From: Trichoplax adhaerens
Taxonomy: Eukaryota; Animalia; Placozoa
DNA length: 64,000 nt
NCBI RefSeq assembly: GCF_000150275.1
Contig: NW_002060961.1
Coordinates: 310,001-374,000, forward strand
Direction: 5' to 3'
The notes beneath the pieces are model-generated. The model was given only the letters and a program-made list of their open reading frames with translations, was not told the DNA's origin and did not search any database. Shown piece by piece: positions 36,679 through 60,339 of the stretch; position 1 is the first letter of the stretch, and every line of letters begins with the position of its first letter. The translations under genes and the position numbers were made by a program.

Positions 36679-39165
36679 TTATAGTTTCCCTGTTTGTAGT
36701 AGGCGTAGAGCTTTCTGTAAGTTTTCTATTGCAGTTGGGGTGTCTTCATATTGTAGAGCACTGATAGCATAGCGACAAAATTTCTGTGCTTTATCGCTGT
36801 CTTGCGGTGACAAAGTAACGCCAGTATTTGAACTAGTCGGGGCAACATTGACATTGCCAGTCGCTGCTGCGGTGTTGTCATAACTTGAAGGCGTTGGCAT
36901 AGTATAATTCTGTGTACTAGGTTGTTGGGGTGGAAAATTTGCTTCATTAAAGCTAGGATTGGAAGGTGACGGCATATCATACTCAGTATTAAATCCAGGG
37001 GCAGGAGGATTTGATGGCATGTTTGTATTGTTGCTAGTAAAGCTATCAGAAGGAGGGGGTACTTGATTGAAATCTCCAAATTCACTAAATGGGTCATCAT
37101 CTCCACCTACTGGACCAGGTATAGGTGCCTCACCACTTTTTAGACATTTAGCAATATAAGCTGCTTTCCATTTAGCGTATTTTTTGTTTCTTTGCACCTA
37201 TTTAAAAGTGATCAATCAAAATCCATTCATGAGTGGATTGATGGCAAGAAACTAGATCATTTGTGAGGCAGTATTTAATTTAATGTAGCTATATTCAACT
37301 TATTTTATAAATTCATGAATAAGCTGACAATAAAGTATCAGGGTATTTATGAGGGAATGTTCAACTGTAAATTCATGAGTGAGTTGATGACGAAGCGTCA
37401 CGGCATTTGCGAGACACTGGCCAACTTATTTTATCAATTTATGAGTGAGTTGATAACGAGACATTAGTGGATTTAAGAGGCAATGTTTAGAGGTTATTTT
37501 GTAAATTCATGAGTGAGTTGATGACGAAGTGTCAGGGCATATGCGAGGCACTGGTCAATTTATTTTTATCAATTCATGAGTGAGTTGATGACAAGGCATT
37601 AGTGGATTTATGAGGCAATATTTAGGTTATTTTATAAAATTTATGAATGACTTCATGACGAGGTATTTGGAGGATTTATGAGGCAATATTTAGGTCATTT
37701 TATAAAATTTATGAATAGCTTCATGACGAGGTATTTAGAGGATTTATGAGGCAATATTTAGGTTATTTTATAAAATTTATGAATGTCTTCATGACGAGGT
37801 ATTTAGAGGATTTATGAGGCAATATTTAGGTTATTTTATAAAATTTATGAATGTCTTCATGACGAGGTATTTAGAGGATTTATGAGGCAATATTTAGGTT
37901 ATTTTATAAAATTTATGAATGTCTTCATGACGAGGTACTTAGAACATTTATGAGGCAATATTTAACATATTTTATAAATTTACGAGCGGGTTGATAATAA
38001 GGTATTAGTGTATTATTTCGAGGCAATGTTTAACTTGTTTTATAAATTCACGAGTGAGTTGATAAGAAGGTATTAGGGCATTACGAGGCAGTATTTTAAC
38101 TTAGTTGATCAATTCATATGTGAGTTGATGACAAGAACATTAAAGTGTTTATGAAGCAATATTCAATTTAACTTATTCTATAAGTTGATGAGTGAGCGAT
38201 AACAAGACATTAGGGCGTATGTAAAGCCATGCTGAATGTAACTTATACTATCAATGGATGGGTGAGATGATGATGGCAAGGCATCAAGGCATTAATGGTG
38301 CAATATTCAATTTATGGTCACTATTCATCGTCCAATTGAAGGAATTTTATTTCTTGTTGACGATGATGAATCGCAGTGGAAAAAATTTTCCACACTTTTC
38401 AAGGTGTATTTTTTCATGTGGTTATATAAATGGATGAGGATGTTGACAAGGATGGATACCTTTTACCTTTTACTGTACGACATCGAATTTGAAATTTATT
38501 CAGTCATGAAGCTATCTTACCTCATCGGTCAATTCACCAAATAATGTCAACATTTCAAAGATGAGCGAAGCTGTATAAAAGGCTTTGATTACATTCCTAT
38601 TATAAGATGATATTCTCTGTTATAGCGATATTGGATCGATCGAAGCGTATTATTATTATTATTGCTTTCGTTTACGCATTACTTATTAAATCGAGACGCT
38701 CTATCTTCTGTATCGGCATGTAGAAATAGTTTCATAGCAATATTTTCAACATGAGCCTGGCCAGCCACTTCGTTGGTTATTGCTTCGTTACCGCTTGATT
38801 TAATCTAAAAGAAGAGATCAACATGAGTAGTACTCGACTTGATTGTATCCGTTGTTCATTATCCATGACACTAGATTATTTCTTACTCCTTCCATTCCAT
38901 CCATCAAGGTCATTAAGAATTTTTTCACTTCGATGTTTTTAGTGCTTTGTTTCAAGCCATTTTGAACGACATATAATTGGGCTATGTGGGAAAAGCGAAG
39001 ACATCATGATGCTATCATGGATAACTCTATTCATATTATCTTATCCTATAAGTATTCTTGTAGCTTACCATAGTAGCAGATGACAGGATCTCTTTTGGAA
39101 AATTCCAAGCTAATCTTGTAAAGAGGTAAGAGAGTTTTCAATTCGGCTGGGCACTGCGATGCCAT
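36679..39165 (-). CDS. VTA1: Vacuolar protein sorting-associated protein VTA1 (LIP5), 5 exons, ~302 aa
   Basis: Exons 39165-39069, 38981-38887, 38804-38683, 38596-38521, 37197-36679 total 909 nt. KRDPVICYY, NEAITNEVAGQAHVENIAMKLF, KAFYTASL, KKYAKWKAAYI; C-terminal VSL domain AQKFCRYAISALQYED. Confidence 0.96.
37225..38310. repeat. Intronic minisatellite, ~60-68 bp unit, ~15 copies (VTA1 intron 4)
   Basis: Near-identical 68-bp core copies at 37600-37980 (gatttatgaggcaatatttaggttattttataaaatttatgaatgtcttcatgacgaggtatttagag), with degenerate copies on both flanks. Confidence 0.92.
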
Positions 39166-41372: not shown

Positions 41373-45088
<3,716 letters not shown>

Positions 45089-56453: not shown

Positions 56454-59400
56454 TTATGGAGTATTTGCAGGAACATTAGTTGAAGATGTAGTAACAGTCT
56501 TTTTTTCACGCATAGCAGTTAAATGGTAGCCAAACGGCCACAATGCAATTCTCCCTAATTTGAAATTCTGAATTCCAAATGGGATGCATATTAGAGTTAT
56601 AAACTGAACTAAACCTAGGAGGAAGTGCTCGATCGCGAATAAAATTCCAAAAGGTAACCAGAGTACGTTGCCACAGCATGTTATACAACTCTAGACAGAT
56701 AGCCAGAGAGAAGTTTTACGATTGCGAATCATATTAATAATCAATTTACGTAATATTTAAATATTAAATTGATAAAATAAGTGGATTTTGTACGGCTTGC
56801 TATCAATTTAAATATAGGATATCCCTTGATCCGTTTATTTTATACATTTGAAGTTAATGCAATTATTATTATAATAAGCGAGACATATTTGCTCTATCTT
56901 TAAAATAAATGATAGGATTCTTTATCTATTGATGATAACTGTAGCTTTTTATTTCTGTACCACTCATGTTAAAGCTGCGATCCAAAATTTTATAATAAGT
57001 ATACCAATACGAGCATACTGGATATAACTTTAGTAATGCTAACCTTTTCGTCTTCCCGAGATACCGGATTTATGCCACTGACATCTTTGCCGAATGGTAA
57101 TAATGTTAACATAGCCATCTAAAAAATGAAAGAAAATTAAATGTTAACCTATTCGCCTTGTTGAAAAGTAGTAGTAAAAGACTTCTAGAGTAACAGTAAT
57201 TTTATTTCTATCATGATAAAATGTATGGACGACGGTATGATATTGTGATAGTGCCTTTAAAAAAACACTCCAGTAAGAACTTCTATTTGTTGATAATTTC
57301 AATTCATTTCATAAATTGTTTATCCTACCGTAAGTATGTATTTGCATAATTTAACCTACAAGTAAAGCTTATTTTGAGATCACACACTAATTACATAAAA
57401 GCATTCTAATACTACAGAAAGAGACTTGTGCAATCGAACAATCTCATCACAGACCTGATCTATTTTGGGACTGTTTGTGTGAACTAACTTTCGAATTACG
57501 GTAGACATTGACATAATCCTTAATCTTACCCACTACTGTACGGTATCATGATCTATTTTTGAAATTGTAATTATTTTATAACTAGCTTTCGAATACGATA
57601 TAGACACGCTTTTCAATCTAATTCAATATTTGTACACACTGTAGTCTAACCTACAAACATCAGCTATTTTGAGAATGTGCTTATTAACTGTAAATAAACT
57701 AGCTTTCGAATTAGAGTTTTATGCAATCTGTAATTTAACCTACAAACATCAGCTATTTTGGGGGATCTGCTTATTAAGTGTAAATAAACTGGCTTTCGAA
57801 TTAGAGGTTTATGCAATCTGTAGTCTAAGTTTAAACATTATCTATTTAGGGTAGCACTTATACCGTGAAGTAACTTTGAAATTAGATATTTGCAAACTTT
57901 ATAACCTGCAAATATGGTTTATTTTAGGGCTGCGCTTATGTGATGAGCTAGCTTACTGTTACTAATTAATGGAGATATCTTGGAATGATATCTTATAAAG
58001 TCGAAATATATCGATATATATCAGTCTACCTTAAAGCAGACAAGGCCGCATGGAATACCAATAATCGTGACTGAAAATGCAACGCCCAAAAGAGCCCATT
58101 GAAGTGCCAAGATGAAGCCACCACAAATTAACCAAAAGACGTTGCCAACCCACTAATAACAAAGTGAAAGTATTTAATAAATATTCATTAGTATAGTATC
58201 ATTAGAAGACTAGAATCATATTATCTTCTTGTAGTCCATTGGTAATGACGATGGATAGATAGAAATTAGTAAAAATTCTCGAAAATTTGTCAGCCTGAAA
58301 TCGTATCTACACGTACTTTCGTCTTATAGAGGGTAGAAAAGTGAATCAAGAATGACATTAATTCTACAACTGTAGAGAGAATATCCAATTCTATGAGCTA
58401 CATAGTACAGTATAGCTTTAAAGGAAATCAAATATTTAAGATGTAAATGATATGAATATCTAGATGATGTTTACGTGTTCAAGATTTGAGAAAGGAGAGA
58501 TGAGGAATGGTAAAGATGATCCATCCTCTAGCTCTCGAATGGATAAGAATGATTTTACGTATAAGGAATGGATGAACAGACTAAATAGGGTATAGAATCA
58601 GCATTACATGAACATGATGTATCTTTTAGCGCTGGAATAGACAAAAATGACTTCATAAGGACTACAGTAGGATATGCAGGTAGTTTGACGATTGGGATCA
58701 TTATTGCATGGACATAGCGTGTCTTCTAGCCCTGAAATGATCAAGATCGATTTTATAGGGAATAGATATACTGCTAGCATAGGAGTAGAATCGCTATTGC
58801 ATGGAAACATATAATGTATCTTCTAGCCTTAACATAAACAACAACGACTTGGATAAGGATTGATGTGCGGTTAGTATCAGGAGTAACATCGGCATCGAAA
58901 GGGAAATAAGAGATCTTGTAGTCCTGGAATGGACAACAAGGACTTTCATCGAGAATAAAATGCAGGTAGTACGAAGAATGAAATCATCATGGAATGGAAA
59001 TGTCTTATCCTCTTTCACTGAAATCACTCATTGGAGCCACTATTGCTTTACAGTTATTGCTGAAGAGCAGTGGATCATAGATCGAATTCAAGACTATTGA
59101 ATAAATTAATAATTATTGTAAGCTTACATGGCAAGCATTGCGAGAATCATACGTCTCGGTGACTTCAGTTTGGGTAACGACAGGATTTTGTTGGCCTTGA
59201 TCGATTTTTAGGTTGATTTGCGTTTGATTCATGTTGAGGATTTGTTGGCCTTGATTTATTGCAGCAACATTGGAATCTGGATAGAGCGCAGGATTTGCTT
59301 GGCCTTGTTGTACGGCAGGAATTGCTTGACCTGGATACATGACAGGATTTACTTGGCCTAGTTGTACTGCAGGATTGGCTTGGCCTTGTTGCATAGCAGG

Positions 59401-59634
59401 AACTGCTTGACCTGGATACATGGCAGGATTTGCTTGGCCTGGATACATGGCAGGATTTGCTTGGCCTGGATACGTAGCAGGATTTGACTGCCCTTGATTT
59501 ACTGGGAAATTCTGTTGATTTCCATACGCAGGAGGATTTTCTTGAAATCGATGCTGGGGATTTTGCTGGCCTTGAGGCGCTGAAGGATTGCCTTGGCCTA
59601 GATTGATTGCCCCAATATTTTTCTCTTGACTCAT
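56454..59634 (-). CDS. Stand-alone double YccF-domain membrane protein with a P/Q/G-rich N-terminal tail, 4 exons, ~313 aa
   Basis: Exons 59634-59128, 58152-58030, 57118-57044, 56690-56454; all introns are phase 0 and GT-AG. Repeat 1 GNVFWLICGGFILALQWALLGVAFSVTIIGIPCGLVCFKMAMLTLLPFG and repeat 2 GNVLWLPFGILFAIEHFLLGLVQFITLICIPFGIQNFKLGRIALWPFG match the YccF pattern GNxxW...TIIGIPFG..FK....LWPFG. Confidence 0.9.
57340..57960. repeat. Degenerate ~80-95 bp tandem repeat in intron 2 of the YccF gene
   Basis: Recurring taacctacaaacatcagctattttg and aactagctttcgaatta. Confidence 0.75.
59255..59500 (-). repeat. 27-nt coding repeat encoding 9-aa units (PAMYPGQAN-like) x~8
   Basis: PATYPGQAN PAMYPGQAN PAMYPGQAV PAMQQGQAN PAVQLGQVN PVMYPGQAI PAVQQGQAN PALYPDSNV. 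Confidence 0.93.
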
Positions 59635-60339
59635 GATGTTGAAGATGGTAAAGACAGCTTCTTCCAATTTAACAACTCTTTGCGCTTAAGTCTAGAAAAT
59701 ACAACATTTCAATCAAAACCACCCAATAAGTTGGAATCCATCATGTTATAGCTGTTGTTACGCTTTGAGGATAAGATAGTCAAGATAGAGAAGTATTAGC
59801 TTATTATTACTCGTATTATTTTTATCCTTAAAGCCGATATTTTTGAGTCTAGAGTTTTAATCAAAACTACCCAATAAATTGAAATTCATCCTATTCTATC
59901 GAATTCAACGCAAAATGACTCTATCCATATTATAGCCAGGGGATAAGATTGATAGATAGGTTTTATGTTATTAATACTACTCGTATTCTATTTATCTTTT
60001 AATGCGATATTTTCGAATAGAGAGCTTTATTGTAAGATAGATAGGTTTTATTTAAAATCTTCTAGGATTCTATTTATCTTTTAAGGTGATATTTTAGAGT
60101 AGAGAGCTGATGATATAGCAAAGTTTAACAAGGCGTCGAAAAAATAGTTCTAAGCATTTCTTGACCTTTTATCGTCATGGAATTTGAATGCTAGATACAG
60201 AGAAAGGATAGAAATTGAAAGCAATAGCAACAACGAATGCTTGGCAAGAAGTGAAATGAATACTATTCTATCGATTGATCGATCAACCCCATTTCTTGTC
60301 CCTCTAGGCCATACTGTTAATCATCATCATCACACTGGC

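Follow-up and report, generated by a model that had tools for sequence, protein, structure and literature searches.

The window analyzed here is a 64,000-nucleotide stretch of the Trichoplax adhaerens genome (contig NW_002060961.1, positions 310,001 to 374,000), and its minus strand carries an intron-containing gene for a protein of the YccF family (Pfam PF03733, or DUF307). YccF membrane proteins are very common in bacteria and have no assigned function, and their eukaryotic relatives are undescribed in the literature that we searched. The window translation was read as four phase-0 exons separated by three introns, which together encode 313 amino acids and are laid out as follows.

59128..59634, minus strand: exon 1, starting at the first ATG (59634) and followed by the donor GTAAGC at 59127; 169 codons (residues 1 to 169) with no Pfam family match; a disordered Gln/Pro/Tyr-rich tail that ends in a Thr-rich strand and a D-S-R-x-x-C motif right before YccF repeat 1
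58153..59127, minus strand: intron 1, 975 nucleotides, GT..AG, phase 0
58030..58152, minus strand: exon 2, 41 codons (residues 170 to 210); supplies YccF repeat 1 with its first long membrane helix and its G-I-P-C-G turn
57119..58029, minus strand: intron 2, 911 nucleotides, GT..AG, phase 0, holding a noncoding tandem repeat (90 bp x 2.1) at 57639-57828
57044..57118, minus strand: exon 3, 25 codons (residues 211 to 235); completes repeat 1 with the second helix and P-F-G and adds a charged linker
56691..57043, minus strand: intron 3, 353 nucleotides, GT..AG, phase 0
56454..56690, minus strand: exon 4, 78 codons plus TAA (residues 236 to 313); a Cys cluster, YccF repeat 2, the C-terminal Thr-rich strand, and a short tail
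56529-56675, minus strand: YccF repeat 2, within exon 4
56478-56513, minus strand: C-terminal Thr-rich strand, within exon 4

A four-exon YccF gene in two placozoan lineages

The exons were searched separately, and two of them matched the Pfam YccF profile at scores well over its gathering cutoff of 27 bits. Exon 2 gave 46.5 bits (E = 5.8e-12) over profile positions 1 to 40, and exon 4 gave 58.2 bits (E = 1.3e-15) over positions 1 to 50. Exon 3, which completes repeat 1, had no Pfam match on its own. For whole-protein steps, the ortholog from Trichoplax sp. H2 (RDD41833.1, here P0001) was used as a stand-in for the spliced window protein. It is also 313 amino acids long, is 99% identical, has the same three junctions, and differs from the window exons by only three substitutions (H28Y, I183F, and S304T). 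The H2 protein matched PF03733 with 108.2 bits in two stretches, and no other Pfam family matched anywhere along its length. The H1 and H2 Trichoplax genomes share 99.1% nucleotide identity, and transcript evidence went into the prediction of the H2 gene set, possibly including that of the H2 YccF model (PMC6057997). The placozoan protein also aligned without gaps to transcriptome-derived homologs over all three exon junctions, with exon 3 aligned throughout.

A first-pass annotation of the window, made from the sequence alone, had proposed that four phase-0 exons splice into a 313-residue protein with two tandem YccF repeats. Both parts of that proposal held up, the first through the GT..AG introns and the identical junctions of the H2 protein, and the second through the Pfam profile search that the annotation had itself suggested as a check. 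We regard the four-exon model as confirmed and the gene as a genuine placozoan gene. The description of the product as two repeats followed by a short tail was correct for the C terminus, as the stop codon falls 21 residues after repeat 2, but more than half of the protein (residues 1 to 169) is a low-complexity N-terminal extension. This Gln/Pro-rich tail had been overlooked, as had a tandem paralog and the stand-alone eukaryotic relatives described below. Just upstream of the start codon lies a further noncoding tandem repeat (82 bp x 1.9, 59951-60108).

An N-terminal tail with PSAP and PPxY motifs

Residues 1 to 150 are predicted to be disordered, with AlphaFold predicted local distance difference test (pLDDT) values of about 40 to 56, and Gln, Pro, Tyr, Gly, and Ala are abundant in them. 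Four features were located within the segment encoded by exon 1.

59575..59586, minus strand: PSAP motif, residues 17 to 20; consensus ligand of the UEV domain of TSG101, a subunit of the endosomal sorting complex required for transport I (ESCRT-I)
59524..59535, minus strand: PPAY motif, residues 34 to 37; PPxY consensus ligand of NEDD4-family WW domains
59277..59486, minus strand: coding tandem repeat, 27 bp x 7.8 or alternatively 81 bp x 2.4 (Tandem Repeats Finder, 76 to 84% matches)
59146..59181, minus strand: N-terminal flank, a Thr-rich beta strand, residues 152 to 163, pLDDT >90

A P[ST]AP motif appeared in 1.6% of composition-preserving shuffles of the Trichoplax tail, and PSAP and PPxY appeared together in 0.3%. 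The same order, P(S/T)AP followed 8 to 32 residues later by PPxY, was found in the tails of Trichoplax, Amoebidium, Sphaeroforma, and a related protein, P0025; the chance of finding both motifs in shuffles of any one of these four tails was 0.003 to 0.042. PPxY was present in the tails of Amoebidium, Sphaeroforma, Chromosphaera, Petalomonas, and P0025.

The 27-bp repeat encodes nine-residue units of the form N-P-A-M-Y-P-G-Q-A. It has lengthened the tail and is specific to the placozoan lineage. The H2 ortholog stands in the database under the name Galectin-3, which we rejected, as neither exon 1 nor the whole H2 protein contains a galactoside-binding lectin domain. The sole likeness to Galectin-3 is the Pro/Gly/Tyr/Gln composition of the nonapeptide repeats in the N-terminal tail, and the misnaming is due to that low-complexity repeat. 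The entry is thus flagged here as misnamed.

Predicted structure of the YccF core

The C-terminal 145 residues make up the two-repeat YccF core, a predicted four-helix membrane bundle. In an AlphaFold model built with a 129-sequence alignment, pLDDT exceeded 90 for residues 151 to 306 or thereabouts, the flank strands included. The modeled elements are a strand (152 to 163), two helices (167 to 196 and 202 to 216), a short strand (222 to 225), two further helices (236 to 266 and 268 to 285), and two C-terminal strands (290 to 293 and 295 to 306). Each repeat forms a helical hairpin with a G-I-P-x-G motif at its turn, and the four helices are bundled. The Thr-rich strands directly before and after the core are modeled as a small beta sheet that packs on it. 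The N-terminal Thr-rich flank was absent from the labeled bacterial YccF proteins and from the untailed sequences sampled.

Fifteen positions were conserved in at least 90% of the 129 aligned sequences: N173, W176, G181, P203, P218, F219, G220, N243, W246, G250, G270, I271, P272, P287, and G289. Among the polar residues within membrane helices, N173 and N243 were nearly invariant in that alignment, and H257 was invariant in a seven-sequence eukaryotic alignment. The segments that bear Lys and Arg are the N-terminal flank, the interrepeat linker, which also holds the Cys cluster, and the C-terminal flank; the two G-I-P-x-G turns are uncharged. Because the charged segments all lie on one face, the positive-inside rule would place both termini and the linker in the cytosol, with the G-I-P-x-G turns predicted to face the lumen or the exterior. 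A Foldseek search with the YccF model returned no structural match.

The core is shared with bacterial YccF (PF03733/DUF307; PRK11770 models). The two tandem 51-residue repeats align end to end with bacterial proteins of 120 to 150 amino acids and share with them the motifs G-N-x-x-W, T-I-I-G-I-P-F-G, Q-x-F-K-L, and P-F-G. The bacterial proteins, however, are compact, intronless, and start at the core, whereas the placozoan protein has 313 amino acids with a 169-residue N-terminal extension. What it adds is a disordered tail of 150 residues, the Thr-rich flank strands, the Cys cluster in the linker, and three introns.

A tandem paralog with the same intron positions

The Trichoplax genome (an assembly of 105.6 Mb in 1,414 contigs, the window being on a contig of 1.36 Mb) holds exactly four YccF matches, two in the window gene and two in a second gene.

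G000:C1396:379223-381411 (L005:5223-7411), minus strand: tandem paralog, on the same contig but past the edge of the window, 12.7 kb from the gene

All three intron positions of the paralog coincide, to the codon, with those of the window gene. Compared exon by exon over 132 codons, the two genes share 81 identical residues, with a proportion of nonsynonymous differences (pN) of 0.22 and of synonymous differences (pS) of 0.55, and their introns have no alignable sequence. Judged from these comparisons, this is the pattern of two old coding genes that appear to have been kept under selection. The shared introns and the saturated synonymous divergence thus suggest that the YccF gene is old in the placozoan lineage. 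The N terminus of the paralog is short, about 27 amino acids as read. Its H2 counterpart, annotated as Inner membrane protein YccF, has 214 amino acids with extra upstream residues, so the 5' end of the paralog is uncertain. Upstream of the paralog, between the two YccF genes, are two tandem repeats, 188 bp x 3.0 (94% match, L005:7682-8237) and 334 bp x 2.8 (L005:8901-9848).

Stand-alone YccF proteins in other eukaryotes

In a search of 1.84 billion representative proteins, exon 4 yielded 1,234 matches at E of ≤0.001 and 170 at E of ≤1e-10. Source labels were traced for 30 of the 150 listed representatives and, in addition, for two placozoan proteins; the labels of protein searches added a few more names. 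After the H2 ortholog, the best matches had the same layout of a low-complexity N-terminal tail, two repeats, and a short C-terminal tail, and Vermistella, Amoebidium, Chromosphaera, and Sphaeroforma were represented among them by stand-alone YccF proteins with two repeats. Several of the eukaryotic relatives originate from transcriptome assemblies. The relatives with labels were the following.

Vermistella antarctica (Amoebozoa): two proteins
Amoebidium parasiticum, Sphaeroforma arctica, and Chromosphaera perkinsii: Ichthyosporea, unicellular holozoans
Lentomonas and Petalomonas: euglenids
Triparma laevis: a stramenopile
Three marine protist transcriptome entries
Chromera velia (alveolate), Leptophrys vorax (Rhizaria), and Perkinsus olseni: weaker, more distant relatives

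The closest of these are known to databases as Inner membrane component domain-containing proteins, for example SARC_10061 (A0A0L0FL13) of Sphaeroforma arctica, or as transcripts from Amoebidium, Chromosphaera, and Vermistella. They have the same stand-alone core and, like the placozoan protein, a low-complexity N-terminal tail, a Thr-rich strand and an acidic-R-x-C motif before the core, a Thr-rich strand C-terminal to it, and a Cys-rich linker. In Amoebidium and Sphaeroforma, the tail has PSAP or PTAP and then PPxY, as in the placozoan. Identity to P0001 is 30 to 40%. The tails are otherwise unalignable, and that of the placozoan is longer through the 27-bp repeat.

No other animal, choanoflagellate, or filasterean was found among the labeled matches, the labels being partial and the word-based searches being swamped by bacterial sequences; a loss of the YccF gene in other animals is accordingly not established. 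Of 8,000 candidates scored, 4,546 reached an E of 1e-10, and nearly all of those with names were bacterial. YccF was present in 5 of 14 control prokaryote genomes, and the ESM Atlas gave only bacterial YccF clusters, with scores of 0.78 to 0.84 that are below the counting level.

Some YccF fusions were encountered among metagenome proteins (P0139, P0312, and P0005/P0007/P0010) that are probably bacterial. The partners are a source-annotated Zn finger (417 amino acids), FHA domains (PF00498/PF16697; 303 amino acids), and long C-terminal extensions (485 to 733 amino acids). Such fusions may hint at the role of the core.

Origin of the placozoan gene

The first-pass annotation had offered two origins, a domesticated horizontal transfer from bacteria or an ancient eukaryotic family lost in most animals. 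A phylogeny with bacterial and protist YccF proteins, which it had suggested as a check, gave a divided answer. In the trees (fast, quick, and careful versions over a core of 119 to 123 columns), the placozoan pair lay amid 13 of the 15 labeled eukaryotes and none of the 6 labeled bacteria, in a group of 33 to 36 rows. An approximately unbiased (AU) test, on the other hand, did not reject a placement of the placozoan pair with the six labeled Bacteroidota against eleven eukaryotes (P = 0.54). The named bacterial YccF proteins came from protein-search labels and were mostly Bacteroidota, symbiont genomes and CAX-fused YccF not being part of the sample. The core tree alone cannot decide the origin, nor does it exclude a bacterial sister group.

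The sequence on either side of the core was more informative. In bacterial YccF proteins, the start lies about two residues ahead of repeat 1. In most of the labeled eukaryotic proteins, the core is directly preceded by a Thr-rich segment and an acidic-Arg-x-Cys motif, and in many it is directly followed by another Thr-rich segment; the exceptions are Leptophrys, which lacks the flanks, and Chromera and some marine transcripts, which lack the Thr-rich parts. Flank profiles were made from 28 nonplacozoan tailed homologs, 11 of them traced to eukaryotes. Against these profiles, the N-terminal flank of the window gene scored 16.0 bits, a value reached by 0 of 2,000 shuffles, and its C-terminal flank scored 9.5 bits, a value reached by 1 of 2,000. 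A holozoan-type profile gave 176 to 313 bits for ten such proteins and then a plateau at ≤160 bits that contained all named bacterial proteins as well as Perkinsus and Chromera. Conversely, the placozoan protein scored below the cutoff of each of the four curated bacterial YccF models (NCBIfam NF008739-NF008742), with 112.2 versus 123, 93.5 versus 155, 88.8 versus 140, and 81.6 versus 213 bits.

In light of these scores, and of the flanks and tail held in common with ichthyosporean proteins, the earlier label of a "bacterial-type" stand-alone protein is not supported. Of the two origins that had been offered, the ancient family fits best, the closest matches being eukaryotic, and the domesticated symbiont transfer is opposed by the flanks, the motif order, and the NCBIfam scores. 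The comparisons suggest that the gene belongs to an undescribed and widespread eukaryotic branch of YccF, composed of stand-alone, tailed proteins with Thr-rich flanks. It was most likely inherited vertically within the Holozoa and then duplicated in tandem in placozoans. For the account as a whole, namely a nuclear placozoan gene for a membrane protein that belongs to a eukaryotic YccF branch and descended vertically through the Holozoa, we estimate a probability of roughly 0.68. What is new here is the eukaryote-specific flanks and the conserved late-domain motif pair; the eukaryotic relatives themselves were already in databases, uncharacterized. The gene thereby brings to light a distinct stand-alone branch of YccF with added structured flanks and may represent an ancestral holozoan gene that placozoans have kept.

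Several observations weigh against this account. Support for the tree group is weak, at 86 by the Shimodaira-Hasegawa-like approximate likelihood ratio test for the quick tree, with values of 71/42 and 40/96 for the careful one, and there is the AU result given above. Chromera and Leptophrys fall outside the main eukaryotic group, because of which the eukaryotic YccF proteins may be of more than one origin. Many of the tailed sequences in the tree group are unlabeled metagenome proteins, and long-tailed bacterial YccF clusters do exist, in the Chloroflexota. Some of the unlabeled tailed sequences may in fact be bacterial, and an N-terminal tail alone may be no mark of a eukaryotic protein. The support for the splice junctions is comparative. 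On the structural side, the Protein Data Bank contained no sequence relative of the YccF protein, and VIA-align returned only ferritin/Dps-like four-helix bundles with Z scores of ≤6.6, which is the noise level for helical bundles and hence uninformative.

A patchier history, in which the gene moved from eukaryote to eukaryote or entered eukaryotes through several old bacterial transfers and the placozoan copy was acquired from a protist, seems unlikely, but part of the evidence does favor it. The family is scattered over supergroups, and the labeled matches included no further animal and neither a choanoflagellate nor a filasterean. The nearest named tree neighbors by path length are amoebozoan and ichthyosporean with euglenids interleaved, and Chromera and Leptophrys branch outside the main group. 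The PSAP-then-PPxY tail, however, has its counterparts specifically in ichthyosporean-type proteins, which fits holozoan ancestry. Moreover, the trees have too few columns to show any transfer, and the labels from which the patchiness is read cover only part of the matches.

A recent transfer of a bacterial yccF gene, perhaps from an endosymbiont, would have had to be followed by the gain of introns, a tail, and flanks and then by duplication, and we consider it quite improbable. Placozoans do harbor intracellular bacteria, as reported in one study (PMC6784892), YccF is overwhelmingly bacterial among the scored candidates and is found in some of the control genomes, no other animal appeared among the labeled matches, and the AU test did not reject a position next to Bacteroidota. 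But the flanks and the PSAP/PPxY order are common to the ichthyosporean proteins, so this history would demand convergence. The best matches after the placozoan ortholog are eukaryotic, the protein falls below the cutoff of all four curated bacterial models, the paralogs share three introns with saturated synonymous divergence between them, and the GC (guanine plus cytosine) content is host-like. Given the flanks, the motif order, the profile scores, and the scores against the bacterial models, the gene is probably not a recent import from the placozoan's bacteria, which removes an attractive but probably wrong case of gene transfer from a bacterium to an animal.

That the gene is dead, or that its model is an artefact made of chance open reading frame pieces joined by eye, is scarcely credible: the failure of exon 3 alone to match Pfam speaks for it, whereas two independent Pfam matches (E of 1e-12 to 1e-15), an intact frame in two placozoan lineages, purifying selection and kept intron positions between the paralogs, and collinearity with transcript-derived proteins, exon 3 included, speak against it.

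Possible function of the protein

The motif pair in the tail invites a functional reading, which we put forward tentatively, as possible but short of probable. In this putative mechanism, the YccF core would hold the protein in a membrane (post-Golgi, endosomal, or plasma), the PPAY of the tail would recruit a NEDD4-type HECT ligase, and the PSAP would recruit ESCRT-I through TSG101. The protein would then act as an adaptor for ubiquitin- and ESCRT-dependent sorting or budding in the manner of NDFIP/Bsd2, LITAF, or ARRDC1. Alternatively, the YccF protein might itself be the cargo that is sorted by the NEDD4/ESCRT route.

NDFIP1/2, yeast Bsd2, LITAF, ARRDC1, and retroviral Gag are PY-motif membrane adaptors or late-domain proteins. 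The placozoan protein resembles them in having a Pro-rich tail with PPxY, here joined by P(S/T)AP, on a membrane module, with the tail predicted to be on the cytosolic side. It has no sequence or fold relationship to them, and the likeness would be one of putative working and not of family membership. The feature typical of this class, PPxY and P(S/T)AP on a disordered segment, is present in the placozoan tail, and its cytosolic side is suggested by the charge distribution only.

Partners for such a mechanism are encoded in the Trichoplax genome, where profile searches found both UEV and WW domains. A NEDD4-type gene with the architecture C2-WW x4-HECT lies at G000:C1411:5475.5-5479.3 kb (locus L006), on the plus strand, with its domains in order. 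Its C2 match is weak, the genome scan gave four WW matches, two of which were checked against Pfam, and the HECT domain was found in pieces.

Other results are less favorable to a sorting role. The paralog and Vermistella have neither PPxY nor PSAP, and the motif pair is thus not universal. The literature search found no published function for any YccF protein, with no transport or binding activity shown, and it found no paper on eukaryotic YccF. When the first WW domain of the C2-WW-HECT gene was modeled in a complex with tail residues 1 to 60, the score was 0.06, a result that counts neither way.

An active YccF core is a second tentative possibility, similar in weight to the sorting mechanism and compatible with it. 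Here the core would be the working part, for instance a small cation- or proton-handling unit or an accessory exchanger subunit, and the tail would set its turnover or location. In a domain survey of non-plant CAX genes (PMC11018787), the YccF domain is reported in CAX genes, by which account it is shared with type II CAX/Vnx1-type exchangers, a hint of the Rosetta stone type. Polar residues in the helices (N173, N243, and H257) are strongly conserved, and the paralog keeps the core without the motif pair. Arguing the other way, no YccF protein is known to have transport or binding activity, and the fold matches are generic helix bundles only. The retrieved proteins included no fused exchanger, and the genome's Na_Ca_ex genes are on other contigs.

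The comparison with these exchangers was also made at the level of the genes. In contrast to them, the placozoan gene has no Na_Ca_ex (PF01699) domain in or near it. The genome has 18 PF01699 matches, and none of the 18 lies on the gene's contig, C1396. The first-pass statement that no exchanger domain follows the YccF repeats therefore proved right, the stop codon being so close behind repeat 2. With no exchanger nearby, we rejected the idea that the gene is a fragment of a CAX exchanger. Among the 150 best exon 4 representatives, no protein exceeded 733 amino acids, and hence there is probably no exchanger fusion among them. The literature search found no paper that combined the terms "Vnx1" and "Type II CAX."

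Returning to the sorting mechanism, the conserved holozoan pair of ESCRT and NEDD4 motifs offers a concrete and cheap entry for experiments. A wider version of the mechanism appears doubtful. It would make the protein a holozoan, perhaps first-eukaryote, four-helix counterpart of ARRDC1 and Gag that couples a YccF core to the PSAP/PPxY pair, of which placozoans kept two copies and most other animals none; if true, it would give the first functional handle on the widespread YccF family.

Genomic setting

The region has a GC content of about 31%, the same as its surroundings. An exon for a Vta1 C-terminal domain (PF18097, 68 bits), a eukaryote-only domain, was found at window positions 36682-37197 on the minus strand. 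Vta1 is a cofactor of Vps4/ESCRT-III. The exon is about 20 kb from the gene with the ESCRT and NEDD4 tail motifs, probably by coincidence. The first-pass annotation had argued from introns and flanking animal genes against contamination, and the setting is indeed eukaryotic in its introns, its 1.36-Mb contig, its 31% GC, and its Vta1 exon. Bacterial contamination is ruled out by the introns, by the length of the contig, and by the recurrence of the gene in a second assembly. Elsewhere in the window, an open reading frame piece at 43077-43313 on the plus strand looks by eye like the N-terminal part of RBBP4/CAF-1 p48; the piece alone had no Pfam match.

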